A stretch of 64,000 bases of DNA from Oculina patagonica. Taxonomy: Eukaryota. Below are positions 8,458 to 45,867 of the stretch, piece after piece. Within the stretch, counting starts at the first letter, position 1. Every line of letters starts with the position of its first letter. A model generated the notes under the pieces. It was not told where the DNA came from. It ran no database searches and saw only the letters and a list, made by a program, of their open reading frames with translations. The stretch is from positions 12,710,001-12,774,000 of the forward strand of contig NC_135770.1 in assembly GCF_052425735.1 (NCBI RefSeq), in the 5' to 3' direction. The translations under genes were made by a program, and so were the position numbers.

Positions 8458-10293
8458 TTATTTTGTGTGAATTTTATTCCTCTCCCTTCTTGGCCGTAGA
8501 TTATGACCTTTACTTCTTGTCGTCATTCCTCCTGTTGTTTTGTCAGTTACAAGATCAAAATGTTTCTTTGAATGACTCCTCAGTGTCATGGGACTTTCAA
8601 ATGAATCATCCAGACCTTTCCTTTTCACTGGTTTAGACTTTGGACATTTTCTACAGACAAAAAGTAAAACAAAATGTCAGACCTTTAACAAAAAAGACTC
8701 TGGTTGACCATTTTTATCACAAAGTTACCACATGACCTAGATCCATTTTGGCACATGGATTATTGTATAAGCAAGTTTTCTTATTGTGTGGGCAAAAAAC
8801 AAGCAGCCATACTGCAGAACAAGGACACAACTTTTAACTTGTTGTTAAAACAATTCAATATTTAGATTAACAAGAACTTAGCTCACAATCATTTACTGTC
8901 GACAAAATAAGACTGTTTAGCTTGTTTCCAAAAGACCAGAACCCAAATGAGGTTGAAAAAATTTTGAAAATTAATGTAAGGGATTAGATAATTTATATAA
9001 TGTGATGACTATGATAAACAAAACATCCCACAGGTTTGAAGCACACTACAATTCAATACAGAGACACCACATAAAAACATTGGCCAATACCACAAATATG
9101 CAAACTAAATGGCCCCTCTAAATAGGGCTACGCACATAGGAGCAAGAGCGCCCATCCCCCACAGGGTATTTGTGGATGATCAAAACAGGACACTTAGAAA
9201 GTCCACTAAAATGGTCAAAAGTCCCCACCATGGGCAGACAATTGCTTTTAAACCCCCTGCTAATGCCCACCCTCCCCCACTGTGGCTTCAAATTGATAGG
9301 TGCATTACCTCAAGTCAAATACCTGGTGTACAGTGTTTGCCCAGGGAGAAGGGGTCATGGGTATTCTTCAGGGTCTGCCAGGGTTTTAAGGTATATGTTT
9401 ATGGTTATAAAGTATACAATGTTTTCCAAATTTTTTTGAGGGGAAATTTTGGATAAGCTTACTGGGTTCATGTTTTTCAGGCATGTTGGTTTACATGTAT
9501 CTCTTACCCCCTTCGCTGACTCTGACTCTTGGATTTTTACTGATGCATAAGGCCTACTTGACTGTTTATTAAAACATAGGTTACTTCACTTAACATAGCT
9601 TTAATACTAGTCTTGGTACACAACGTTGCTTTACCAATGCAAAATTACCTCCATGTAAGCTTGTATTAAAAAGAAGTTTTAAGCTTACATGTCCGCTTAT
9701 GTACGTAAACTGTACATGTGCACGTGGACATGTACACCAAAAAAAAAAAAACTTTCAAAAACTTTTAAGTTTCCAATCCATTTGTTATCCTGGCTGTTAA
9801 ACTTTGTTGCATGTGTCGTGAAAAAAGACCATTAACATTGATCAAATTTTCAACATGTCCTAGCGCTTAGCTATAGTAGTTAGTGACATGTGGTCACTGA
9901 ATAGAGTTTCTGTGTCTGAAGACTCTGAGGACGGCCGCCTTTAAGAAAAAAAAGACAAACTTACTGCAAATGGTCTGGTACTTCCCAGTGCCACATCTGC
10001 AACTTGCAGCGACTATTGGGGCATTTCCTGACTCCTAGCTGAACTTGAATCTCGATATTGTCCTCGGGTATATCTGGTCGTGTGACGGGAAAAGCATTTT
10101 CTCTTTGGCAAGTAGGACATCTTTCCAGCCCAAATCTCCTGTTTCCCTCTGTGTCATACAGGCAGTTCTCGCACAAACGATGCTGACAAGACCCGTAAAT
10201 CATTCGCAGATTCGGAGCCCAGCATATCAAGCAGTTAAACCGTTGCTCAAACGAAATAGTCGAGGAGAACCCAAAATTATCGCTGTCCACCAT
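8458..10293 (-). CDS. Small RING finger plus TRAF-type zinc finger protein with basic tail (~173 aa)
   Basis: Exon 10293-9965 (CLIC...CQHRLCENC...CPTC RING; CPNSRC...HLQ) joins in phase 2 to exon 8650-8458 (KCPKSKPVKRKG...TK*), completing the C-x4-C...H-x3-C finger. Confidence 0.75.
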
Positions 10294-10531
10294 ATTGCAA
10301 ACCTTTTCTTTTCCCGCCGTTGTTTTGCGTCTCCATGTGAGAAGCATTGTGATTGGTTCGTTCGGTAATTAGCCGAAATTTGATTGGCTCTCTGTTGTCT
10401 CTCATCTGTCCCGTGAAGAAGACGGCCTGGGAATTTTAAAAACTTCGGGACGGGATTCGGGATTGGGGATTGGATAAAAACGTCCTCGGTCGCCGGTTTC
10501 TTTTCGTCACGTGAATATTGACAAAATCAAT
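10294..10531. promoter_or_regulatory. Compact bidirectional promoter with four CCAAT boxes
   Basis: 238 bp between divergent ATGs; ATTGG at 10352, 10383, 10462 and 10469. Confidence 0.55.
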
Positions 10532-13500
10532 ATGGAGGACTCCAAAATAAAAGCTGGAGAAAGAATTGAGGAGTCGCCGCACGTATCGATACCGACAAGC
10601 GAACACTCATTTGTAAGAAGAACTGTAAAAAATGTAGTATCTGGAACATTCAGTGGTATTGCCGTGTGTCTGGTAGGTCATCCATTTGACACGCTCAAAG
10701 TTCGTCTCCAAACCCAGCCCGTGGATCGACCGGTATACAAAGGACTTTTGGATTGTTTTGTGAAAACCATGAAATGGGAAGGGATTGGAGGATTATACAA
10801 AGGAGTCGGTGGGTAGTCTTGTTTTGATACATTTAAGATTATGGATGGTGATATTAATTTAAAGCTTACGTACATAAATAAAGCGTACCGGTATTTAATT
10901 TTATGATTAGTTCAAGGGCGCGTCTGACATTTGCAGACTGCAGACTGGAAACTGCAGACTAAAGTTAGGCACATACTAGGGGACTAGTCGCAGGGACTTA
11001 TCCCTTAGTGTGTACTGGTGAAAAATTGACCGATTTGTGGGACTATTGGTCCCTGTGACTTGTCCCCTGAAATCAAACCAGCTTAATTCGTGGGACTAGT
11101 CGCAGGGACCAAAATGTGGTCCCTGCGACTAGAATTTCGATGCAAAATACGTACGAGTACACACTAGGGGGCTGGTCCCTGAAGCAAGCCCCGGCGACAA
11201 GTCCCTGGACTAGTCCCCTAGTTGTGCCAACCTTAAAAGTATATTTTGTTTTTTTTTTTTTTTTTTTGTTTTTTTTTTTTTTGGGGATAAGAAAAAAAAA
11301 AAAAAAAAAAATTCAACTACCGACAGCGACGGGAAGTGCGGTAAAACAGCGACACGGGGCATTTTTAAATTTAGACAACCAACACGGGATCCCTCTCTGG
11401 CAGGGCCTCTTGTCTGCAAGCCTGCATGAGCAGTCTGCATTTTCGCTGTCTGACATTTGCAAACTGCAGACTAGCAGACTTGCAGACTTTTACTCAGTTT
11501 AGCCTACTACGCACTCTGGTTAGCCTACTATTCATTCCGGTTAGCCTGAATAGTACTTCGGGTAGCCTGTTCATGGTTAACTCTCAATAATGGTAATGGT
11601 AACACAATTATATAATTCTCTCAGTCCTTAGTCTGTTGTTTGCAGTCTGCAAATGTCAGACACAGTTGTCAGACCGTTATCAGACAGCCCTCTTAAGATG
11701 AGCCCAGTAGCCAGGCTCGCCTGGTTTTCAGGATGACCTTTTGTCTCTTCATATGGAAAATTTCAGCCAGGTTCCCAGCATAAAAATGTGTGAAATGTGG
11801 TTTGCACAACTTAAAACCAAAAAAACTAGTTTGCTCTCAAAATATTTAAGAAACAAAATAAAGACAAAAAGGGTCCACACAATAATCTGCATCATTCGCA
11901 CTTGTCATTCCCTGCTAGCAGCTGACATAACAGGGAAAAAAAGACCTCTGCCCTGAGACAAGGTGGAAAATAGCTATATTATGCATGCAGCATGGTTTCT
12001 TAGCCGCCGACTGTCACATGATGTTCTTTTAGGCAATGAGGGCTCAAATAGCAGTGGAGTTATGTAAAGAAATGCACAAGACACAACAGGCTCCAGTTGC
12101 AGTCAGCAAAAAATGCAAGAAGCATGCATTTTGAAAAGAGCCATTCAAGACCATGGACGGTGGTTGAATAAAAGCTGTTTTCTACCCAGGGCACAGGTCT
12201 CTTTTCCCCTGTTCTGACAGCTAAGTGAACACAAGGGGAAAATGGCCTCTGCTAGCAGAGAAACCTGTCATAGCTACCAGCAATCAACAGTTATTGTAGC
12301 TTCACTGCTACAGCTAAATGGTATACTTCTGATGAGGGAAATACAGCAGACAAGCAAAACTGATGCCATCTGCAAGTTGTCCTGTTGTAGAAGCAAAGCT
12401 AATTTTGTTCCTCCCGGAAATTAGGTTGGAGTTTTCATATGGGACATATAATTACAATTTACAATTGGCAGTTTTTGTCTAATCATAATAACTGTTTATT
12501 GTCACAGGATCTCCTATTGTAGGTCAGATGTTTTTTAGAGCAACTCTCTTCACTTCCTATTATCAGGCAAGTTGATTCTATCAGTGCTGTAGCTGCGAGT
12601 GCCAGTAAGGGAATAATTTTGGTCAAATTTCATGGGTCCATCTTAATCTCAAATTTCCGTGACTTTATCTCAAAGTCTTGATTTCTTTTGCAAAGTCTCA
12701 GGCTTGCAGAAAAGAAATTTAGTCTTGCCATCCACAAAGTCTCAAAGTTTGTACATTTGCCACACCTAGCGTAAGGTATTGTGTGCAAAGCTGCTGTATC
12801 CTAATCCCTTCACAAACTTCTTGATAACTTGAACCAAAAGTCATCAGATTTGCTTCACTTAGTCAAGCACTGCAGTTTTTACTATACCTCTGATTTCTTG
12901 AACTCCTGATTTATTGAACCAATTGTCATTTCTCTTGAAGTTTTCCCTTGTAACTAGTGTTGTATCAAAGGCATGTAATGCCTTCTGGTGGCCTTATGTA
13001 CCTAATATACATGTCAATTGATTTTAATAATACTAATCCCTTAAAAGTAACAGCCCCTGAAGCCTGCATATTGGCCGTTCCGAGGTTGCGCAGGGAACTG
13101 GGGCGAGTTTTTAATTTTAAGCAATCAATAATCTATACATTTTGATACCACCACATGAAAGAACTCGGTGAGATTGGATATTTAACCAAGCTTGACACTT
13201 TAAGGATGAACAAAGGCGAAGTTATGGGCCTTGAAACATGGCTAAAAATCCATACAAACGTCTCTTTTTTTGAGACAGCGTCCCCCAAAACCATATAAAC
13301 TCTTAAATTTTTTATGATTTTTGTGATATTCTTTAAAATGAGCAAACATAGTGATTTTCATCTTAGTTTCTTTCAAATAATGGGTCTTTGGTAGAATTTT
13401 ACAGCTGTCACAAAACAGATAAAAATTTTAAGAGTTTATGTGGTTTTGGGGGACGCTGGCTTTCAATTAGAGACGTTTGTGTGGATTTTTAACCATGTGT

Positions 13501-31382: not shown

Positions 31383-34300
31383 TCAAGATTCATACACTTG
31401 ATGAAATTGAGTAATTTTTTGTCTGCATACTGGACAGATTTTTGTGCTTTGATGTAATTCTTTGGCACATGTCATACAGACACCCAAATGACCGCATGGA
31501 ATCAGAACACTGTTACGCGGATTGTCCATACATATGATACATTCCTTTTGTTGTTCTGCGGACGTAAAAAGCAGTACAATCACTGATTAGAAAAGCCTGG
31601 TGTAAAGGAAGACTCCTTTGCAATAAGACAAAAAAAACATGGTAACAAGAATAGTTGGCACTACCTTACATAAGAAACTTGATTGGCACTACCTTACATA
31701 AAAAAATGCGATTCAGAGCTCTCGCATGAAAAAAATGTTACATGAAGAGCGAGTCATTGAAAGGTTGTGAGCTACTTAGTCCAAAATGTCAGGCGGAATC
31801 GTTGCCATTGCGAACTATTGCAAATAAACTGCTTGCAAACGTGTGAGTTTGGTACACTCTGCTGAAAGTAATTTAGGTGTCGAATTATGTTTAAGTTGAA
31901 AATGAGCTTCTGTGTGGACTATCGGAAGCTTAATGCAGAAATTTTTGCCGTGTCAAATCGCACAAGGTAGCTTAGACATGACATTACTGCAGTAGTGATG
32001 TCCCACTTAAATCCGGCATCAAGACTTAAACTGACAAAACAAACACCGAACTCCAGACGAATCCTAACTGAAAATTCGCAGTGGCAACATAAAATAAACA
32101 TTGCCAAGACAACAGAAAAGTGTGTTAGATTGAAATTTCTACAAGGATGATCAAACACTGAAAATCAGGGTATGCATGGTTAATTTTCATTATGTAGGCA
32201 TCAATGATCGTCATGAAGGAATAGGAAAGTCCTTAGTAACTAGCATGATGTGCTGTCACCAATTCCCAAATAGTCAAATGATGATGCTAATCGTACCCTC
32301 CTTAGTAACCTGCATGCTGCTTTAGCCAGATTAATGATGATTTTTTCCGCAACACACTTGCCTTTAATAAAAAGTTGACCTAATTTATACAATTTATACA
32401 ACACTTTTGTACAAAAACGAATTTAGAATTGACATTGCTGCACCCACCTTGAGGCTGTTGTGCTGTTTTTGGTGGGTCACTGGTGGGTGGTGGTTGTTGC
32501 TGTGCCGTCCTTGTTAGATCACCAGAGGGTTGCGGTTGCTGTTGTGTTAGACTTTGGCTTCTAGTTTCCGGTGGTTTACTATATACTGGTGGAGAGCTTC
32601 CAAAAAGGGTACACAAAATACGAAGAAAAGATGTAATGTCAGATGTTTTCTGAAAAGACAAACGCAACGTCTTATTATTTTTCTCAGATAATACAAGTGC
32701 CACATACTTGTCCAATCAGAAGAAAAACCAAAACCAATCAGTGTGACTCACTCGCACACTTTTTCCCGTGCTTAACGCTGGCTACATGTATTTGCTTTCG
32801 AGTTTTGATTGGTTCACGGGACTGCCTAATGTGATTAGCCAGAGAGATTACCTAATGGTTTTGGTTTTATGCGATGAATTAATAATTTCTCGACTAATAT
32901 TACTTATAATTAAGAACAGTCATTTTTTCCACAACATTCAAGACACAGGATATTAAATTATTTCCTTTACATACATTATTCCATTTATGAAGGTAAGGAT
33001 GATACACTCTGCCATTTGTGTCGACAAATTCTGACTCCTTGATTGCCATTGAGCTTGTTGGCCTGACATACACCAGAGGTGGAACCTCAGGATGGTTCTC
33101 TTGTAACCATACAACTACTGGAATGTTGTATATTACACCTGCAATGAAGTTCTGATCTCAACATAAATGCTCCAAAGATACATTTATTTTTATTTATGAG
33201 GTTTTGCCTTTACGGTTGCAAGAATGTGCTTAAGCTATCCTATGGAAATGACTTTTGGTTTTGAGTAATTGGAAAGGTTGGAGTAGTAAGTACATAGTAG
33301 CAAGGGTAAAATAAGTGGGGGGCACGCGAGCGCCGGCCTAAGAAATCAATGCTTATATATATAATATATATTAAGACATTGCGATTCCACTGTACAGGTG
33401 TTTGGCTTGTTAGTTTTGGAAGAACTTAAATTTTAGATTATGTGCAGCAGATCAAATCAATAAAAAGAATAGATACAGACAAATAGTAGAAAAAAACCTC
33501 TATCCTTACCTCTGAAATTAACTGGGATTGTCCCTTCCAAGGTAAATAACTCTTTTTGTATCCCATTATTATATGCTGTAATGAAAATGGCATGCAAATT
33601 ATTGTAACATTAATTTGCACACTGTTTAACTTACAAAATATATTAATAAAGTGAAGAAATTATTCAACATGACACAAGCGTGGGACAAAGAAAAAATCTG
33701 AGTCCCCGACGGGAATCGAACCCATGGCCTCCCAGATACAGGTTGGGCGCTCTAACCAACTGAGCTACGAGAGACTCGTTATGAGCTGGGCCATTTACTA
33801 GGTTAATATGTGACACGTGTCCTGCATACTGCTAGGATCAGCAATGTCGAAATCATCAAATGTGTAGTAAATAATAAAGATGGTAAATTTCAAGCTCGGT
33901 GAAAAATAGTGAAGAAATTATTCAACATGACACGAGCAGATGGGAGGCCATGGGTTTGATTCCCGTTGGGGACTTATATTAGAGTTTTTCTTTGTCCCAT
34001 GCTCGAGTCATGTTGAATAATTTCTTCACTATTTATCACCGAGGTTGAAATTTACCATCTTTATTATTTACTACACATTTGATGATTTCGACATTGCTGA
34101 TCCTAGCAGTATGCAGGACGCGTGTCACATATCAAACTAGTAAATGGCCCAGCTCACAAAGAGTCTCTCGTAGCTCAGTTGGTTAGAGCGCCCAACAGGT
34201 ATCTGGGAGGTTATGGGTTTGATTCCCATTCTTTGTCCCACGCTCGTGTCATGTTGAATAATTTCTTCAATATTTATCACCGAGCTTGAAATTTACCATC

Positions 34301-35332
34301 TTTATTATTTACTATATTAATAAACCGATAGAAGTAAATACAAGTTTAGTATATTATTCAGGATCATGTACTTTTGAGTGAGTTTTCCAAGGGGAATTTT
34401 TAACAATCTTTGCATTTGAATCTCATATGGAATGCAGTTCCTAACCAAAACAACTTATTATAATAAGACTATGACATAAATTATGTTATAAAGGAAAAAA
34501 ATTACAAACAGCTAGATTATAACTTACTAAATTTTTGTAACTCAGGCCTTAAGCCTGGGAAATACTTTAACACCTGGTCAACTTCCTGAACACATGAGTT
34601 TGCTTTTTTCTAGAAATTGAACAAGAAAAAATGTTTCTTTATTAGTCAAGTCTTCTTTGCTATAAAAGGAGTCAGGCCTACCAATGAGTTGTTTTTGTTA
34701 TTGTTGTTGTCATTATAGTTATAATGTATTCTAGCTAGTATAGTATGCCATGTTTGAGATAAATATTTAATTTCATTAAATTTCATTTACAGTGTACTTA
34801 AATTCATATAATTAAGTTGTAATGAGCTTAAAAGATTATTCAATAAAATTTGTATAGTAATGAGCAGCAGAGAATTAAGGCCCTTTTTTGGTAGACATAA
34901 TTATTAATGATAAACAATTGATTTAACCAGACTGATTCCAAAAGCGACGACTTTTGTTACTTCCAAATGGGCAGCCTTTTTCGATCACCATACTATTGAA
35001 GGGCAGCAACTTTCAGGCAGCTAAAACATGTACCATATGTGTTCAAACCAATCCATCTTAATAATAAAAAATAATAAATTATAAAATGTTTTCAATATTA
35101 ACATACAGAGCTGACAAGGGATAAGATATTTTTGGAAATTTAATTATCTGCAACAATACTTTATCCTTTTCAGCTCTGCAAATATTTTTTGAAATTTTAC
35201 ATAACATTAACACAGGGTAAATACTCCTAGGTTTGTGACATTTGTACCTTTGCCGTTCTGTGTTAAGTTCGGTCTTCCGACCTTATTTGCTTCTGACTTC
35301 TTTTTGAGGGTACTGTTTTTATTTGGAGGCAT
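31383..35332 (-). CDS. TSG101-like UEV domain + Pro/Gln linker + C-terminal RING-HC protein (~245 aa)
   Basis: Exons 35332-35282, 34609-34528, 33575-33510, 33138-32975, 32649-32448, 31555-31383, all GT-AG with consistent phases. [67 protein letters not shown] is a UEV; ECIICMD..PCGHLGVCMTC..CPVCRQ is a RING. Confidence 0.85.
33648..34313. repeat. Second locus of the tRNA-derived tandem/inverted repeat, in an intron of the UEV-RING gene
   Basis: Same unit as 26628-27212 (period 258 bp), ~1.1 copies on - joined to ~1.4 copies on +; another fragment at ~31105-31270. Confidence 0.8.
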
Positions 35333-36151: not shown

Positions 36152-39074
36152 GAGTTGTCTGTTTTTATAACAAAACCCTTTAAAGGAAAAATGTTTCGTG
36201 TTTTATGGACTAGTTCCACAAAATGACCTCAATTCCCTGATACATACTGGAACCAACCGGGGGGGGGGGGGGGGGGGGGGAGGGGATTCAAGCAAGAGAT
36301 TATTGTTTTGTAATGGCTTATGTTTCTGGAGCTTCATTGGCTTAAACCAGTAATGAACTTTGCTGTGGGTTACAGAGAGATGTCTTATTTCCAATAGCAA
36401 CAATGATTGTGTTATATCTTGGCCAACCTTGAAACACTCTATGGAATTCTTTTCTATGGGCAGTAGAGCATTCCCCAAGGGTGTTTGCGTGCTTAGGTTT
36501 TTCAGTTTCAGGCCAAATGAATTAAGGCACAGTCACAGTTTATTCCCGGATTTTAATCCCGAAAGATTTGTTTGATGGTTCCAGGGCAATTATCGTGATT
36601 ACAACACAAAAATACCCGGCCACTTTTGACGACGAATGCGTTGTACGAAGCAATTATTTCAAGACAGCAGAACTCTGGTAAAGCTTTTTGATTTTAGTGT
36701 TATCAGTAAAAATATGTTCTCCCTTGAGCTAAAAAGTCTTTATCTAAGTGTCTAAATTCCCTGAGAAATTTTGAAGTTTTATATTTTATGAACATTTTTT
36801 TGTTTCTTTGCATGTCGTCGTCGGCTTATACCCAAACTAAACTCTTTTGTATACACTCGACGATGTACACTTCATCACAAGGCATTTACTTCCGCTCGGC
36901 ATACGTAACAAACTATACCGATGTTTGAATATAAACTTCAATAAGATATTAGGCATCTAGGTCACACTTTATGCTGTGAAAAATACTTGCCTTAGTTTTC
37001 TTGATCAATGCAGTCCGCCAAGAAACGGCCATTTGTCAAAAACAAGCCAATAAACTCGATAAGCTTACACCTTCGTTCATTCCTTGATTTCTTGTAAAAA
37101 GTAAAAAGTAGTATAGTACCCAGTCTTACGCGCCCGAATTGAATGCCCGAGGAGGGTGAGGAGTGTAGGGACTCTGACCACCGTTTGCACTGAAATTGGA
37201 GCAAGCCATGCCAGTATAATTTTCACCAAAAAAGCTCTGCTGGTTCATAATTAGAAGATTTTCGCACTTTTTGAAGCATTAAAGTCAATAACAATTTAGA
37301 TTCTTGCCTTTTAATGCATCAGAATAATTGCAAATTCAGTAGATCTGGGACCTAACAATATGCCGGAACATGCTCCTGTACCGGAAGTATTTTTACTTGT
37401 CCGCAGTTATTCACTACGAACTATTTACCTGTTTTAGGAAATTAACGATGCGCATATGCATGTTATTAATGCGAATTTCAAAAATTCGCGTTATTTTTAT
37501 GCACCTTTATTTACGTCATTGTATATATATTTGGGGGTTAATTTGAATCACACTATTTTACAACATCGTTATTTTAAGGCATTTATATTTCCAGCAAAGT
37601 TCGGGAAAGTTTCATCAGTAATCTTCCTCTCCATCAGAGGTCTTCAGAGTCAGTCGACACATCGTCATTCAATATTGATTTTAAAAAATGTTTTTAGTTT
37701 CGTAACGTTTGTTATCTCCAAGGGTAAATGGAGAAACCGCTCAATTCTTTTACTTTATAGACATCGCATTCCTGTCTTCCCATTTTCAGGTATTTCTGTT
37801 GCTGGTCGTTTTTGTTTTGTCTTGTCAAAAGCAAAGGAAGCTATGGAAATCATCACGCATAAAGCACCAAATTCGCGTTATAAATCAAATGTATGTGAAC
37901 GTACACCCACGGAAAAATCGCTCTAGATTAAATGCATGTAAATAGAACTTTTCGAAAATTCGCGTTAATTTTATAACGGCGATTTTGTTTGCGTTGTTTT
38001 AACAACGCAAAAGGATGTTCTTAAAATCAAAATTCATGTTCTTATAAATTTCGGTTTCAACGTTCTTATTAAAAAAAGGTTCGTTAAGTATGTGAAAGAG
38101 TGTACCCAGTCTGTACGCTTTGTTCTCCATTTTCTCAGTCTGACTGTCTTTCCACTGGGTACGCAGTCTGTCTTTCCCAAGCTGAGATTAAGAGGTGAAG
38201 CATTTTTATTTTGTTCTCCATCGTATCAAATAACCCACATTCAAATGGTCACATTCTCATCAGTTTTCTGAAAAGCCATATCATGCTAAGAACATTCAGT
38301 TTTGATTCAACCACTGCTGTAAAAGACGTTCTTATAGAAAAGTGTAGATCTGTTACAGTAGCGAGATGTAAACTGACTCGTTTTCCACTTCATGTTACCT
38401 TCCCGGTCTCCGTACAGATCATAGTAAATAACCAAATTTACGAACTAATTTGCCATTTCAGCTAAGTTTTAAAAGGTCAGTCCGTGAATTAATCAGGCTC
38501 AAATGAGGCCAGACTGTAGTTCGACTGTTTTTCCAACGACAGACTCGGTCTAAAGAGAATTCAGGATTTCTTTTTTTGTTATTTAAGAAATTCCAGCGGT
38601 GGGTACCAGATTCTTCGGTCTAGAAGTTGCATGTCTTGTGTAAATCATCATATGCTAGAAGCGAGTCAAAAACTTGAACTCATACATTTTTATTAACTGC
38701 TCTCGCACGCTTTTAGTCTTCCAGAAAACCACATAAAAACAAACTTAAACAGTGTGAAAATATTTTACTTCATTTTTATTTCAAATAAAAACTTTAAAAA
38801 GTCGATTTAAACCAGCATACAGTTAGTGAAGGCATTAAAAAAATGTCTTGGCAAGCTGTGACCACACAAACAGAGGATGGTATGCCTGTGGTGTCAACGT
38901 ACCGATCTACTGCATGGCACTTCTGAGTTCAAACCAAAGTCCATGCGATCCCATTTAATTTTACTTTGTTTTTCTGTTCAATTCCAATGGTTACATTGTT
39001 AAAGTTGCACTGAACTTGATGACAGAGATCCATATATTTAAATAGTGCGTGAGATTTGTCCACTGATCCCTCGT

Positions 39075-42000
39075 TTATGGCTGAAAGACACGAATAACCC
39101 CGGTAAAAGTCTGCCGGCATACTGGGCAAATGCCTTGATCAGCTTTTAGAGTGTCAGCACATGCTGAACAAACGCACAAATGATGGCATGGGACCAACAG
39201 ACTGTCTCTAGCACTGTCCATGCACACCACGCACTCATTCTGAGGACCTGCTGACACAAGAGGAAAAAAGGACAGTTGAATTAAACTTTACACTGAAGTA
39301 AACTGGTATGTACATGTATCATGAATGTAATCTATTTTATGACAGATATGGCACGTGTATTATGAATCCACTAACCACACCCTTTTACCAAAATGTTTCG
39401 TTAATTACCATTAAAATGACTGAAACACAAACCATCCTAGTTCGCATGAACACTGTGGTCCATTTAAACGAAACGATATCAAGTACCACAACAGATTTTT
39501 CGTATAACATAAAAGATTTCTCTGGCTTCGACTACACATTTGCACTACATTTTCGACAGTTAACTTCTATCGTTTGACATTTGAAGACTTCAGCTAGAAA
39601 AGTCAAAATTACTGGGCAGTTATTGTCTTGATACAAGTATACTTCAAAATTCTCAGAACTCACATTGAGAGAATGCATAAAAAAATCAGTAAGACGAATC
39701 AGAACATTGAGGGTATCCGGTCACATCGTTCCAAGGTTACTTCGTTCCAAGTCACATCGTTCCAACTTTCGGTCAGATCGTTCCAAAAAAAAAGTCACTT
39801 CGTTCCAACTAAAAGTTACTTCGATCGTTCCAAAATAAAACATCTAATAAAGAAATAAGATTAATTAATAAAGGGTATTACACGCAACAAAAGCAGTCGC
39901 ATATAAAACCACGCGCAGTGTGTGAAAACGCTATATAGTTTACGGTCGATTTTGTTAAGTTAGTTTTACGTTTATTTTAACCATAACAGGATTCAAATAC
40001 TTTTTCTAAGGCTCAAGGCAACCAATTTGATTTATTCTTTCTCATTTTAAGCCACGCGAAGTGCGAAAAAAAGAGCCGCGCTACCGCGAGCCAGAAAAAA
40101 TCTGATGTGGGAGAAGAGGGAGCCAAAGCGACTATCTTCACAGGGTTGTTGGAAGTGAAAAAGGGCGGGATCGAATTTTCCACGAGCACTATAGTTGGAA
40201 GAACTTTAGTTGGAACGAAGGACTTTTTTTGGAACGATCTGACCGAAAGTGGAAGATTGTCTGGAAGAAGTAACCTTGGAACGATGTGACCGCAATTCAC
40301 ATTGAGCCATACCTTCAGCTGCTGCAGATTCTGGATGTTGCTCTGTTGGTACATGTCCTGCACTACCATGCTGATGGCCAAGGTATGAACCAACCCCTCC
40401 ATAGCCGAGGCTTGGCAGCTGGCTATGAGGTGCATGACCATCCTGTAACAGAGTTCTTAGCCTGTCTCTGTGAGCTGGGATTAGAAAATGCAAATAAACT
40501 AAGAAACTAAGATCAAAGCTGGTAATTACACCCATATGCATATTTTCGTAAATGGAAAGAAAGTTGTGGAAAGAATGTCGTTTGTCACCATCTCATTCTA
40601 TGATTGCGCTGTTGGTAATTTTTGGGTCATGTCTCTTGTTGGAATTTACCCTGAAAGAGTCCCAGTAATGATCAGTGTAAACAATTCGTTTCCATGCTTC
40701 ACTTCAAACTTCCACTTTTCAAATGAAGTCCAATGAATGTCCAGTACTCAAAGACTTCACCCAATATATATATATATATGTTATATGTTATGCCGGGAGG
40801 TCCGCATTGGGAAAAACTGTACCCTCGGTCTTGAGTACGGCCCAAGATCTGCGGCCTCGGGCCGTGTTTAAGACCGAGGGTACAGATTTTCCCAATACGG
40901 ACCGATCTAGGCCGGCATATAATGTTTTTATTTTTTTCCTACTTTAATTTGTTTGGAAAAGAAACCGATAAAAAATGTGTCGCAAAATCTTTGTGTACAC
41001 GCGGATTTAATTTCAAAGTTGAGTCCGACTCGATCGACAAGCAAGAGTGAAGATTTCTGTTTGCCATCTAATTCCGAAGAAAATACCTTTGCTTAAAATG
41101 AATCGTACTCAAAAAAGGTTCGGCATATTTAATTTACACTGTACAGAGAATCAAGAAAAGCAAATGAAGTCATAAAAATGGCACAAATATGCCACAAAAC
41201 TTAACACATGAAATCGATTTTGGCTTTCCGAACAATTCCCGATATTAAAATGTTTTGAAAGTCTTGAAAGAAACTTTGCTCGCAGGGTGTTAATCTTATT
41301 TCTCTGACTCCAAAATACTCTTTGACTGAAAAGCAGTTTTACAAGCTATTCACACTCGTATTTAAAACAAATTTAACTCGTTAGACCGAAGCTACAATTA
41401 CCTACAAAATGATTTCGCGCCGTGAGCGGTCCGTACGTGGGATCCGGATGGGAAAATCCGGACCGCTGGAGCAAGTGCAATAAGCCAATCAGGTTCAAGG
41501 ATTAAGGATTCCGGACCGCTCAGATGCTTGAGAAAAAAAATAATTTATTTCATTTGCATGCAATAGAGATGTGAGAATTTGCATAGAATGACTTGCAGGT
41601 TTTCCAGTATTTGTATACATAATTATCAATGTGGATGGTATGCACACACCATTACTTCACCTAATATTTTTCATCACTCGTTTTTCTGGACCAAGGTGAG
41701 TTGTTTCGGTATTCTCAGGGAGTTGAAAGGGGAGGGGGAGGTGAAGAGAAAATATATTAAAAAAAATAATGGTGTTGACTGTACAACTGAAAAATTAAAT
41801 TTAGTAAATCATTGTACATACTAGGTCATTTTTTTTGACTATTGAATTAAGTTTAGTGAAAAAACTGTCAATTTTCATGTGCTAGAGTGACATGTCAAGC
41901 AAGACAAATAACACTCTTTACTGTTAGCAGTTCTTTCAGTCTGATACTAACGGCAGATTGTAAGATTCTAGCTCCGTGAATTATATTTTATTCCCAGCAA

Positions 42001-45000
42001 GCCTATCCCTACCTCTCTTTCTGGCTTCAACTTGTGCATGACTCAGAACAAGAGGTGTGTTTCCAGAGCGAAAGAAGAGTGTTTTACCCATTCCTTCTAA
42101 GATTTGTCGCACTAGAAACGAGACACAAGCTTATGTTTAGTAGAGGTCAACCTCAATAATTATGTACACATGTATGTACACAATAAAAGTTATAAATTTT
42201 CGGTGAGTACCCCTTCACCGGGATATATAGCATCATATCCATAGTTTAATCGCAAATGTTTTGAACTTCAAGAGAAAAAGTAACTGCTCTCTTGGTATGG
42301 GAGAGCAGAGTAATATTTGAATACCATAGACATAAAGAGAAAGAAAAGCTATAGAGCTGGAATAAGTATATATGAGCTCACCCAGATTAGGAGACATGTT
42401 TTATCTAAAGTCTATTAATGTACACAATTCAGAACACAAATTCACTGATTCATAAATTTACAAATTCAGTATTCAGGTAATATATGATCAGCTCAATTTG
42501 ACTGTCTGCAAAAATATAATATGTTCAATGTCTTAAACTAATGCAGTCAGAAAGGCAAAACCTAAAATAGATGACTGACCTTTTTGTATAGAATCCTGAC
42601 TAGTTTGCCTGGCTAATGTGATCTCAACTTCAGGGATTCCATATACAGGATAAAGGAATCGGATACCAATACAATGCTATTCAAAGAACATTAAAACAAC
42701 AAGAATTAAGTTGTAGCTGTATAGTAATTTTTAATGGAACTAGTGGTTCCCATTGCAATAAACAATAATTAACAATAGAGCTAGAACAGTTTCTGATTTA
42801 ATGTTGAATGAAATCCAAACTGCTTTGGTTTTGTTTCAGTGCAGTTTGCAACTGGCTTAAAAAAACTCTTGCTACCTATTTAAAGATGATTTCCAGTCCG
42901 TACTGCGCAATCCCGCCGAATGTTTGTGAGTCCACAAAAGAAGAATGTTACTAGCAAAAATAAAAATTCCGGAACAAAACTTACCTTTTCTTCATTATTA
43001 ATGCCAGATATCCGAAAAACAATAATGAGTAAAAGAAGCGACGGTATCACGGCGGCCATGTATTCTTGAACGAAACGATCCGTAGGCGAACTAAAAACTC
43101 AGTACGCTATCACCGAAGTGTACGTTCAACGAATTCAAAACAAAAATGAAAACATTCAAACCCTGTGTCTGCGCAGTATGGACTGGAAATCATCTTTAAC
43201 CAACTGGATGCAAAAAAAAAAAACAAAACCAATCAAACAATTTGGTCACATGCATTTTGCCTGTTCTTGGCATTGGTTACATGAATTTGCTTTAATTTCT
43301 TCACTATGACTTATTTCTCCACTATGACTGTAATTTTATGATTAGCGAGCATGGTGCTTTCTGGCAATGTGTGAGCTGTTGCCACTCTTACTTAGTCTGG
43401 ATGAAAGTAAAGAACAGCTACAACATCCATCAACAGTTGCCCAGTAGTCGTCTGACAGATGGCCATCGTTGTCTTGCAGACAATGGATGGCCTCGTTGTC
43501 TTGCAGACAATGGATGGCCTACAGAGAGCCAACAGTCAGACTGTCAGGGACCTGTCGGTAACTTGTCTGTGTCGACACACAACTGACTGTCAAATACAAG
43601 TGGGAGTTATTGTTCACAAACACAAAAGTTTCTGGCATTTTTTTGATACCTTGGCATAAAACCTAGAAGAATGACACACCTTTTTCAATTCTTTTCAACT
43701 ACTTTTTAAGGCAAAGGACGGCTTTGTAAAGGAGATGCTTATTCAAAGAGGGGGCAATTAATCCAGGATGGGCAAAGTAAGTCACGACTCTTACATTTGT
43801 ACCTCTGGATAAGCTGCCTTTGATGCAATATCACTGACATCGAGTTGAATTGTATTACTGGAGATAATAGTATCTTGTCCACAAATTCTTGATACACCTT
43901 TAAGTAAAATGCACAGGGCAGTACATATGTTAGAGAATTGTTGAAAAATGTACAGCACAGAGCCCAAAAGTGGGGCCACTTTTTAATAATTCACATTCTT
44001 TGGTAAAAATGTAAAAATGTTGTTTATAGTGGTCATGCAGTTAGTTTCATGTTTTGAAGAGATATGGTACCGGTAGTTACTAATTTACAGGTATGCCACT
44101 GGAACAGAGGAAACAAATATTTTAAATGAACATAACATAGTTTAAATTCCAACTGGCAGGAGACAGACCAGTTGGCTATATACAAAGCTTGACCGAAGAT
44201 TTGAACTCAGGATGGCCGAGAACAAAAATTCAGCTAGTGGCAGAGTGGATGGATTGAACCCGGGACCTCCAGATTACAACACCAGCACCCTAAACCACTT
44301 GGCCACACTGCCTCCCTGCTCTCCTCCTTGTGCAGTCATTATCCAATCAGAAGCCAAGAACAGCTTCCAGTTGACTTCTGATTGGATTAAATCTGCACAA
44401 AAGAATGTGAATCAATTAAAAATGGTGACCTTACATGCCCCCGCCCCCCCCCCCACCTTTTTGTATTTCTGAAATAAAAAAAAAATCAACTATGGATCAA
44501 TTTTTTTATCATCACGTCATGCACGGTATTTAACAGAAAAAGTTTAAATTATTACCTATCTCACATGCGACAGCAGCGACTCGAGGACCCAGAAGTGACC
44601 CCAAAACAGTAAAAACAGTAAACAAAACAATATACACAGAACAAAACATAAGGTACAACAGTCAATCCCAGGCCCACGACGAAGCGAGAGAGGACGCGGA
44701 GAGAAACAAAGGCGACGAAAGAGTGGAGAAACTAATGGACAAAATTAAACAAAAAACACTAAACATGAAGCTCAGACTTTAGAATAATCATATAAAACAC
44801 ATTGAGTTTCTTATTTTTTAAATTATCAGTACGATATTAAATTTCGCGATTAAACTCGCGTGCCTATTCGCGAGTATAAATTCGCATTTTAAAACGGAAA
44901 CGGAATTAGTACCGCGAAATTAAGTGAGAATAAGGTAGTCTACCTACTTTCAAAAAGATTCTGTTTCACATTTAGGTCTTCAAAAACTGCTTCGAAGACG

Positions 45001-45867
45001 AATCTTGCATTTCGGACACAATTTTCAAGGTCTTCAGTAAATGTGACAGTACCCTGAGAAGGGAGTAACCAAAGGTCTGTGTGTGTTAAAAAGTAGTTAG
45101 GTTATTTTATGGAAAGACCCTAATGACCTCAACTGTCTCCCCACTCCCCCTCCCTCCCAAATCTTCTGTAAGGGGAGACTCAGGGTTTGAGATATTTTAA
45201 TTTTTTTTTTTTTTCCGGCAAGGTATCAGTAAGGAATTTTAACAGCTCAAATTCCCAATGATCTCCGGACAGCAAGTAAATTATTTAAGTTTTCTATTAA
45301 CTTGTTGGATCAGGTTTTTGTTCCGAGACCCCTCTCTTATAATTTTGGAACTCTGGAACTCTCTTTATTTGGACCTCCCATGTTGAAGTGATGGGGACAC
45401 TTTTGGAATTCGAAGTTTTAAAAGGCGCCCCTAAAGGTTCCAGGATCTTGTTTTGTTAATTAGTGTGGTTAAAAAATTTAGTTTTACTGACGTTCATTTG
45501 TTGTATCAAACACAATGGGGCTTAATAAACCTTCTCATGCCTCCCTTAACTTACCACAAAGTTCCCAGTAATCATCCGTTCTTCTCGTCTGAGCTGTTCT
45601 TTGTGTTCTTCCAGTACATTTCTTGCTCTTTCAAGTGCTTGGTTACTTCGGTCATACACCTTCACACGATGTCCATGGTAAGCTAACTCGCCTAAAACAA
45701 GATAGCCACAGCTCAGGATAGTCAGGATAAGAATTCACATGGATCCGATCGATAACACATGAAAACGCTGGAAAACGTTGATTATGTTCTACGGTCGCTT
45801 TACCTGCAATGCATGTGCCCATTAAACCGGCTCCCAATACCGCCACTTCTTGTGCATCACGAAACAT
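39075..45867 (-). CDS. 3-hydroxyacyl-CoA dehydrogenase NAD-binding-domain (pseudoenzyme) fused to C-terminal RING-HC (~311 aa)
   Basis: Exons 45867-45804, 45691-45555, 45053-44948, 43897-43803, 42676-42580, 42111-42013, 40474-40313, 39250-39075, all GT-AG with matching phases. VAVLGAGLMG, VYDRS, FVFEAVFEDLNVK, SSNTI, PEHCIGIRFLYPV..EVEI, MGKT; RING ECVVCMD..PCHHLCVCSAC..CPVCRQ. Confidence 0.85.
39718..40292. mobile_element. MITE with modular TIRs built from GTCAC(A/T)TCGTTCCAA subrepeats
   Basis: CGGTCACATCGTTCCAAGGTTACTTC at the left and its reverse complement ending at 40292; lies 20 nt from a splice donor. Confidence 0.75.
40780..41540. repeat. Interspersed repeat with large terminal hairpin (possibly non-autonomous Crypton-type)
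   Basis: GGTCCG.ATTGGGAAAA.CTGTACCCTCGGTCTT ... AAGACCGAGGGTACAG.TTTTCCCAATACGGACC palindrome; AGCCAATCAG motif near the other end. Confidence 0.5.
44136..44315 (-). mobile_element. tRNA-derived SINE
   Basis: The reverse strand begins GGAGGCAGTGTGGCCAAGTGGTTTAGGGTGCTGG...CCCGGGTTCAATCC (A and B boxes). Confidence 0.65.

Follow-up and report, generated by a model that had tools for sequence, protein, structure and literature searches.

We analysed a stretch of 64,000 nucleotides from Oculina patagonica (NCBI RefSeq assembly GCF_052425735.1, contig NC_135770.1, positions 12,710,001 to 12,774,000 of the forward strand), hereafter called the window, whose numbering is used for coordinates unless another contig is named. 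It contains a gene, termed here the Rossmann-RING gene, in which the Rossmann domain of 3-hydroxyacyl-CoA dehydrogenases (HADs), a fold that binds nicotinamide adenine dinucleotide (NAD), is joined to a RING domain, and the description of its product as a pseudo-dehydrogenase RING ubiquitin ligase (E3) is well supported. The gene consists of eight minus-strand exons within 45867-39075, with GT..AG at every intron. Spliced by script, they give 936 nt (311 codons, no internal stop), and an in-frame TAG lies 7 codons 5' of the start codon ATG at 45867. The spliced 311-aa model agrees, residue for residue, with XP_078349544.1 / KAL9953029.1 of the O. patagonica RefSeq set. A preliminary description of this DNA had proposed the same eight exons, coordinates and length; splicing, the open frame, exon-by-exon Pfam matches and the RefSeq identity confirm them all, and each of the motifs quoted there (GAGLMG, Asp35 after strand 2, EAVFEDLNVK, SNTI and GIRFLYP) is found in the translation.

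Translated singly, exons 1-5 each match the Pfam domain 3HCDH_N, in colinear order along its profile of 180 positions. Exon 1 (45804..45867; profile 1-15) holds the start codon, strand beta-1 and the GxGxxG loop (GAGLMG), and closes with a GT donor; exon 2 (45555..45691; profile 18-55) encodes helix alpha-1, strand beta-2 ending in Asp35 and a long helix. The EAVFEDLNVK block, with the family-invariant Glu88 and Lys97, lies in exon 3 (44948..45053; profile 66-98, E-value 7e-07), and the SSNTI block, in which the Ser of the canonical SNTS is Ile (Leu, Met or Ile in the family), in exon 4 (43803..43897; profile 101-129). Exon 5 (42580..42676; profile 132-161) encodes GIRFLYPVYGIPEVEI, the former active-site strand, with Arg140 in place of the catalytic His and with its dyad partner Glu152 retained. 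The final Rossmann strand (GKTLFFRSG) and the beginning of a long basic helix are supplied by exon 6 (42013..42111), and the end of this helix, followed by a Gly/His-rich disordered linker with the short conserved motif P-x-L-x-H-x-G, by exon 7 (40313..40474). Exon 8 (39075..39250), which starts in phase 1, encodes a C3HC4 RING, which occupies the very C-terminus of the protein with the tail V-F-Q-P, and carries the stop codon; translated alone, it matches zf-C3HC4_3 at 8.5e-16 (57.9 bits against a cut-off of 27). Five colinear matches to one domain, together with a RING in a single open frame, cannot be explained by chance.

Contigs from three sequencing runs (X1, X2 and X3, bearing three organism labels) were aligned to positions 39060-45059. 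Contigs of these runs skip the introns at 39250/40313, 40474/42013, 42111/42580, 42676/43803 and 43897/44948, with CT..AC on the plus strand (42676/43803 and 43897/44948 in each of X1-X3), so that five of the seven junctions are supported by contigs, including both junctions through which the RING exon is connected to the dehydrogenase exons. The three junctions which the preliminary description had singled out for checking (43803-42676, 42013-40474 and 40313-39250) are thus all seen in intron-skipping contigs; those between exons 1 and 2 and between exons 2 and 3 are taken from the RefSeq model and the colinear Pfam matches. The Rossmann exons and the RING exon are parts of a single transcript. 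The last intron has a tandem (NAGNAG-type) acceptor, at 39250 and, 3 nt downstream, at 39247, and the latter is used in contigs of runs X2 and X3. Its use in place of 39250 accounts for the RefSeq isoform X2 (XP_078349545.1, 310 aa), whose sole difference from the 311-aa protein (isoform X1) is the missing Ala254.

We give practically no credence to the possibility that the model merges a dehydrogenase fragment with a separate, adjoining RING gene, or that it represents a pseudogene in decay. The contigs are short and no single record runs across all exons; otherwise no support for such an artefact was found. Against it stand the intron-skipping contigs of three runs, which link the exons (including 42013/40474 and 40313/39250), an architecture and a length that are alike in about 70 proteins from many phyla, and a spliced model with neither stops nor frameshifts. 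A mis-joined model of two genes is excluded by the junction-spanning contigs and the RefSeq identity, and is effectively refuted.

The Rossmann domain and its former active site

The full-length protein matches 3HCDH_N (PF02737) at 7.6e-42 (143.7 bits; residues 7-177, profile positions 1-173 of 180) and zf-C3HC4_3 (PF13920) at 2.6e-14 (residues 256-303). The C-terminal 3HCDH domain (PF00725) gave no match in any of the five family members subjected to a Pfam scan, whereas the RING-less relatives recovered by the family-profile search do carry it. In an AlphaFold2 model built from a 56-sequence family alignment (mean predicted local distance difference test score, pLDDT, of 84.7), the Rossmann domain exceeds 90 and the RING is confident; the last Rossmann strand (177-180) is followed by a single long basic helix (191-211) and by a disordered linker (216-253, pLDDT <50). 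The claim that the C-terminal dehydrogenase domain had been replaced by the RING is therefore borne out, since PF00725 is missing and helix 191-211 leads into disorder and the RING. No signal, transit or membrane segment is visible in the protein sequence.

The linker is otherwise variable, and its residues 218-226 (window ~40385-40411, minus strand) hold a short motif, hydrophobic-P-x-L-x-H-x-G, which can be aligned across phyla from corals to molluscs and echinoderms and is often followed, in most bilaterians, by N...P-x-Q-D-D. P220 and L222 are conserved in at least 90% of the family. This motif could be a docking or an autoregulatory peptide.

A Foldseek search with the N-terminal domain returned FHMPC 5-dehydrogenase of Mesorhizobium (4om8) at 6.4e-18, as well as Hbd, HADH and MFE1; the predicted fold stays within 1.5-2 A of that of Hbd, with a root-mean-square deviation of 1.5 A over 180 columns against Clostridium Hbd with NAD+ (6aa8). 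Among solved proteins, 4om8 is the best match both in structure and in sequence (9.6e-24), but it is only 27% identical and possesses both the catalytic His (GMHWSNP) and the C-terminal domain. Its function in vitamin-B6 degradation is not transferable to the Rossmann-RING gene.

In catalysis by HADH and Hbd, the His of GxHFxNP acts as the base, a Glu orients this His, and the Ser of SNTS and the Asn polarise the substrate; the acyl-CoA cleft of HAD enzymes is closed by the C-terminal domain, which also forms the dimer. We take the catalytic His to be His158 of human HADH. The preliminary description had stated that His is replaced by Arg and that SNTS reads SNTI, and HMMER alignment to four solved enzymes (4om8, 6ium, 3mog and 6aa8) verified both statements. 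The counterpart of the Arg of GIRFLYP is the His of GMHWSNP, GMHFFSP, GLHFFNP and GMHFFNP; its Tyr aligns with the Asn or Ser of HFxNP, and SNTI with the SNTS of 6ium, 3mog and 6aa8 and the SDTS of 4om8.

The same replacements run through the 56-member family alignment, on which all residue counts given here are based. HADH, Hbd and PaaH (3HCDH_N plus 3HCDH) share with the family the match along the whole Rossmann domain, the GxGxxG loop, the Asp after strand 2, the E...K block and the Glu of the His-Glu dyad, but the family has Arg for His (Arg140 in 54/54), Leu, Met or Ile for the substrate Ser (position 119; L 35, M 13, I 6) and Tyr, Phe or His for the Asn of HFxNP, and a linker and RING in place of the C-terminal helical substrate and dimerisation domain. 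Glu152, the dyad partner, is present in 55/55 members and aligns with the Glu of "vev" or "iev" in the solved enzymes. The surrounding strand is equally constant: Phe141, Leu142, Pro144 and Val145 each in 54/54, Tyr146 in 51/54, and Glu150, Val151 and Glu152 in 54-55 of 55.

The distribution of the Arg follows that of the RING. Among the additional matches of the profile search, all 18 environmental sequences that continue towards or into the RING have GxRFLxP, while the RING-less matches have GxHFFNP or GxHFFSP in all five cases in which a motif search found the motif (in three more no motif was found). A search with the Rossmann part alone revealed no RING-less close relatives with Arg; three apparent cases proved to be truncated models, two of which (P0281 and P0282) stop within the RING, while the third, P0198, diverges at its 3' end. 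In the sequences at hand, Arg and RING go together without exception, and the question of whether the exchange is fixed in orthologues can be answered in the affirmative, as every RING-bearing relative has it. Since the His, the Ser and the C-terminal domain are all lacking, the members of this family are not functionally HAD enzymes, and we infer that the Rossmann domain would no longer work as a 3-hydroxyacyl-CoA dehydrogenase.

A Pfam 3HCDH_N search of the same genome identified three canonical loci (C9:5987589-5989771, C6:16758304-16758939 and C3:5515514-5517339). The first is HADH-like, with SNTSS and GLHFFNP, and the third is multifunctional-enzyme-like, with GMHYFSP; both retain the catalytic His. 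The Rossmann-RING gene itself was missed by this search owing to its divergence and exon size, not to its absence. The presence of canonical, His-bearing HADH-type genes elsewhere in the genome implies that the Rossmann-RING gene is not needed for beta-oxidation.

Alternatively, the protein might be a new enzyme, in which NAD and an Arg-Glu pair serve some other chemistry, possibly together with the RING (for example, a Deltex-like reaction that links NAD or ADP-ribose with ubiquitin, or the oxidation of some other small molecule). In favour of this, neither Arg140 nor Glu152 varies within the family, both lie in its most conserved block, the dinucleotide motifs are intact, and the closest solved relative, FHMPC dehydrogenase, acts on a carboxylated pyridine and not on acyl-CoA. 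On the other hand, every HAD-family enzyme has its active site closed by a second domain, which is missing here; the substrate-polarising Ser has been replaced (and so, by our own reading of the alignment, has the Asn), and such chemistry has no known precedent in this fold. We therefore regard a new enzymatic activity as improbable.

The reading of the domain as a pseudo-dehydrogenase is accompanied by the retention of its dinucleotide site. In the GxGxxG loop, G12 is conserved in 48/49, G14 in 49/49 and G17 in 50/52 members, and Asp35, which ends strand 2 and, as an acidic residue at this place, goes with a preference for NAD, in 53/56. In the EAxxE...K block, Glu88 and Lys97 are each found in 56/56, and Glu92 is Glu or Asp in all. 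GxGxxG, Asp35, Glu88 and Lys97 have been kept across the cnidarian-bilaterian split and also in an environmental clade described below. The HADH equivalents of these residues hold the riboses of NAD. This wide conservation argues that NAD(H) is still bound, and binding by the Rossmann domain is plausible.

The strongest family-specific conservation is seen in the strand R-F-L-x-P-V-Y-x-I-P-E-V-E and in the linker motif, which would fit a protein-binding surface equally well as a small-molecule sensor. The Rossmann domain might accordingly serve solely in protein-protein interaction or substrate recognition, with NAD structural or absent and no metabolite information transmitted. The most conserved elements (the strand, GKTLFFRSG-x-x-P-L-I-L-S and P-x-L-x-H-x-G) are surface-forming and family-specific, and the first two of them face, in canonical enzymes, the domain that is missing here, so they should be newly exposed. 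The conservation of GxGxxG, Asp35, Glu88 and Lys97 is, by contrast, hard to explain without a bound dinucleotide, and we consider a mere scaffold rather unlikely, though by no means negligible.

The RING and its predicted dimer

The zinc ligands C259, C262, C274, H276, C280, C283, C294 and C297 are present in 56/56 members, in C3HC4 order and spacing. R298, directly after the last Cys, is found in 56/56, P295, before the seventh Cys, in 55/56, and I/V261 in 56/56; from general knowledge of RINGs we take R298 to be the basic "linchpin", and P295 and I/V261 to be positions of the surface that contacts the ubiquitin-conjugating enzyme (E2). In terms of its sequence, the protein is a RING-HC E3.

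In 54/56 members, a Tyr or Phe with only two residues behind it occupies position -3 from the C-terminal end. An aromatic near the C-terminal end is typical of RINGs that pair via their C-terminal tails. When residues 248-310 were submitted to a complex predictor as a homodimer, the score was 0.59, compared with 0.00 for the best control; three runs agreed in at least 96% of contacts, with a partner pLDDT of at least 84, and the predicted interface places tail 305-310 against 274-278. In a benchmark, the mark for a dimer was reached by 21/30 proteins solved as one-chain pairs and by 0/23 solved as single chains; for eukaryotic proteins the figure was 17/29, but only 1/7 for those without an older solved relative. 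A RING homodimer formed via the C-terminal tail is thus predicted, in the sense of likeness to known dimers and not of binding.

The closest RINGs are those of MGRN1 and RNF157 (3.7e-14 to PDB 9qru; ~55-60% identity to the vertebrate proteins). The Rossmann-RING protein is not an MGRN1 orthologue, because it is without PF26192, the N-terminal domain of MGRN1 and RNF157; its RING is placed at the extreme C-terminus, unlike that of MGRN1. The next-best PDB RING matches were cIAP, MUL1, MDM2 and XIAP. The RINGs of cIAP1/2, XIAP, MDM2/MDMX and MUL1 resemble that of the family in the C-terminal aromatic tail and the predicted tail interface, but their non-RING parts are unrelated, and the dimer of the family is a predicted one.

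Family, annotation and neighbouring gene

A search with the RING exon over 1.84 billion representatives yielded full-length proteins of this layout, and word-indexed searches followed in which one such protein, the Rossmann part by itself and the family profile served as queries. The latter gave about 70 proteins that contain both domains and measure 280-330 aa, from at least 10 animal phyla. They come from Cnidaria (Oculina, Desmophyllum and Nematostella, XP_001633345.1), Hemichordata (Saccoglossus, Ptychodera and Glandiceps), Echinodermata (Strongylocentrotus purpuratus, Lytechinus, Patiria and Amphiura), Mollusca (oysters, clams, scallops, Octopus, Elysia, Haliotis and a chiton), Annelida (Capitella, Ridgeia and Paralvinella), Nemertea (Lineus and Tubulanus), Platyhelminthes (Macrostomum), Rotifera (Brachionus), Chelicerata (Ixodes, Amblyomma and several mites) and Myriapoda (Strigamia and Chamberlinius). 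No vertebrate, insect or nematode members were found with this word-based index, which is not proof of loss, although the vertebrate MGRN1 and RNF157 did surface via their RING. The corresponding ESM Atlas cluster comprises 152 members, all eukaryotic and all with both domains. One family model, P0191 from Chamberlinius hualienensis (478 aa), has an additional PX domain (PF00787), which is either a real domain or the product of two merged genes.

Proteins of the same architecture (25-31% identical) form an environmental clade derived from metagenomes. One of its members, P0285 (GMRFLHPVWFIDEVEL), is encoded by a single uninterrupted open reading frame of 996 nt, at 10001-10996 of the ENA contig NODE_773, a gene-dense contig of 32 kb with 60% GC from a sample labelled "centipede"; its neighbours are OHCU-decarboxylase/transthyretin, FSH1 and patatin genes. 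This clade suggests that the family may exist outside animals. If it belongs to a unicellular eukaryote, the Rossmann-RING fusion predates animals.

A maximum-likelihood tree was constructed on the Rossmann domains, with six canonical matches (mostly bacterial or metagenomic) as the outgroup and with three short or aberrant rows (P0206, P0208 and P0107) left out. A branch with 100/99 support separates the whole set of RING-bearing sequences from the canonical enzymes. Within this set, the animal sequences with named sources group in a clade (96/87), in which cnidarians are separate from bilaterians, and cnidarians, ambulacrarians and arthropods group roughly like the species. This pattern points to a single origin and vertical descent; as far as the tree indicates, the fusion forms one old clade, which was present before cnidarians and bilaterians diverged and has since been passed on broadly in step with animal phylogeny.

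The family proteins are already in public databases as predictions, under names such as "3-hydroxybutyryl-CoA dehydrogenase-like", "L-carnitine dehydrogenase", "lambda-crystallin-like", "fatty acid oxidation complex subunit alpha" and "FHMPC dehydrogenase-like", and the RefSeq name of the O. patagonica gene is taken from FHMPC 5-dehydrogenase. It had been anticipated that automatic annotation would make a plain dehydrogenase of this gene, and these names bear this out. A full-text literature search found no papers on the Rossmann-RING architecture. The family was found in none of vertebrates, Drosophila and C. elegans, and has therefore escaped study.

A second gene with a RING, here called UEV-RING, lies on the same (minus) strand ~3.7 kb downstream of the Rossmann-RING gene (window 31386-35330). 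Its exon 32975-33136 matches Pfam UEV at 5e-20 and specifies a UEV domain like that of TSG101, and a zf-C3HC4_3 RING (31386-31556, 1e-18) stands at the C-terminus of the product. This RING is 50% identical to the RING of the Rossmann-RING gene, which makes it the best RING paralogue in the genome; it likewise has an aromatic residue at -3 from the end, and both RING exons begin in phase 1, at positions that differ by one codon when counted from the first Cys. Recent local exon shuffling of the RING from the UEV-RING gene is excluded, as the fusion is common to bilaterians and the environmental clade. The neighbours of the Nematostella orthologue are a TRIM-like gene and a DM-domain gene, with no UEV-RING, and both the age of the fusion and this different neighbourhood indicate that the RING was not gained by recent local shuffling. 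The UEV-RING gene may instead have copied its RING from the Rossmann-RING gene.

Several repeat-like sequences were noted in the introns of the two genes. Within an intron of the UEV-RING gene, ARAGORN reported a tRNA-Thr(TGT)-like sequence (33700-33775, minus strand). By eye, it lies in one arm of a ~300 bp inverted duplication (~33640-34300), whose other arm also contains a tRNA-like stretch, and it looks like a tRNA-derived repeat and not a working tRNA gene. In introns of the Rossmann-RING gene, word depth reaches the thousands over two stretches (42860-43259 and 44060-44459) in each of the three contig runs, where loose ends and indels are numerous. These stretches, probably dispersed repeats, lie outside the exons of the gene; the second contains a tRNA-like sequence that received no ARAGORN call.

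Proposed function of the family

We propose that the Rossmann-RING protein is a soluble, tail-dimeric RING E3, in which a catalytically inactive, dinucleotide-loaded HAD-type Rossmann module forms the recognition or regulatory part. This combination of properties seems to us somewhat more probable than the contrary. The RING would pair with a second copy via its C-terminal tail, as do the RINGs of the IAP and MDM2 type, and recruit E2 charged with ubiquitin. The Rossmann domain, probably loaded with NAD(H), would act as the recognition or regulatory module, and the remodelled strand R-F-L-x-P-V-Y-x-I-P-E-V-E together with the linker motif would constitute its functional surface. That the protein has E3 activity, binds NAD(H) and dimerises is what we infer from the retained residues and the models described above.

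Several points weigh against this proposal. Expression was very low in the single raw poly-A run (a handful of reads), and the identification of the three contig runs as RNA is a guess, with some intronic depth present; it should be added that intron-skipping contigs at canonical splice sites are hard to explain unless they derive from RNA. NAD(H) binding is read from the conservation of motifs, and the SNT block is less conserved (Asn117 in 37/54, Thr118 in 39/54). The best-conserved block is not the dinucleotide site but the former active-site strand; it appears too well conserved for a relic, and could mean that it has taken on a new role, in a small-molecule or catalytic pocket or in a protein interface. 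As Arg can be a general acid or base in some enzymes, the term "dead" must be used with reserve. Finally, the dimer score may reflect the memory of solved IAP-like RING dimers, given how rarely the mark was reached by eukaryotic proteins lacking an older solved relative.

A further step from the proposed pseudo-dehydrogenase E3 is that occupancy by NAD+ or NADH switches the ligase activity or the choice of substrate, an idea which is plausible but which we consider less likely than not. In its more specific form, the presence of NAD+ versus NADH in the dead Rossmann domain would determine how the RING dimer is shaped or paired, or how far the linker motif is exposed, and this redox- or NAD-gated ligase would be an ancient feature of animals that vertebrates, insects and nematodes have lost, a loss that would explain the lack of studies on it; this fuller account is doubtful. 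A still bolder variant would involve Deltex-like ubiquitin transfer onto the bound nucleotide. Sensing of acyl-CoA is less likely, because the acyl-CoA cleft needs the C-terminal domain, which is missing here.

The control of a non-metabolic output by a nucleotide-binding module is known from other proteins. The WWE domain of RNF146 binds iso-ADP-ribose and activates its RING, and CtBP and NmrA/HSCARG are NAD(P)H sensors with a dehydrogenase fold, the latter resembling the family also in being a Rossmann fold minus a catalytic residue. These likenesses are analogies and not a sign of membership, since the proteins belong to other folds and families. In vertebrate UEVLD, a UEV domain is fused to a lactate/malate-dehydrogenase-like domain. 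This too is a fusion of a ubiquitin-system domain with an NAD-dehydrogenase fold, and a UEV-RING gene adjoins the Rossmann-RING gene; UEVLD, however, contains another dehydrogenase family and no RING, and the parallel may be a coincidence.

To our knowledge, few E3 ligases read a metabolite directly. A RING whose only partner domain is a dinucleotide-binding pseudo-dehydrogenase would be a simple candidate for coupling the state of NAD(H) to protein turnover and, if this is true, protein ubiquitination would be tied directly to the redox state of the cell. The dehydrogenase names under which the family is filed also inflate the beta-oxidation and vitamin-B6 pathways inferred for invertebrate genomes. 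Nematostella vectensis and Strongylocentrotus purpuratus both carry the gene, which makes it experimentally tractable. Redox and NAD metabolism are central to the biology of stress and bleaching in reef corals, and this link provides an applied reason for interest in the Rossmann-RING family.

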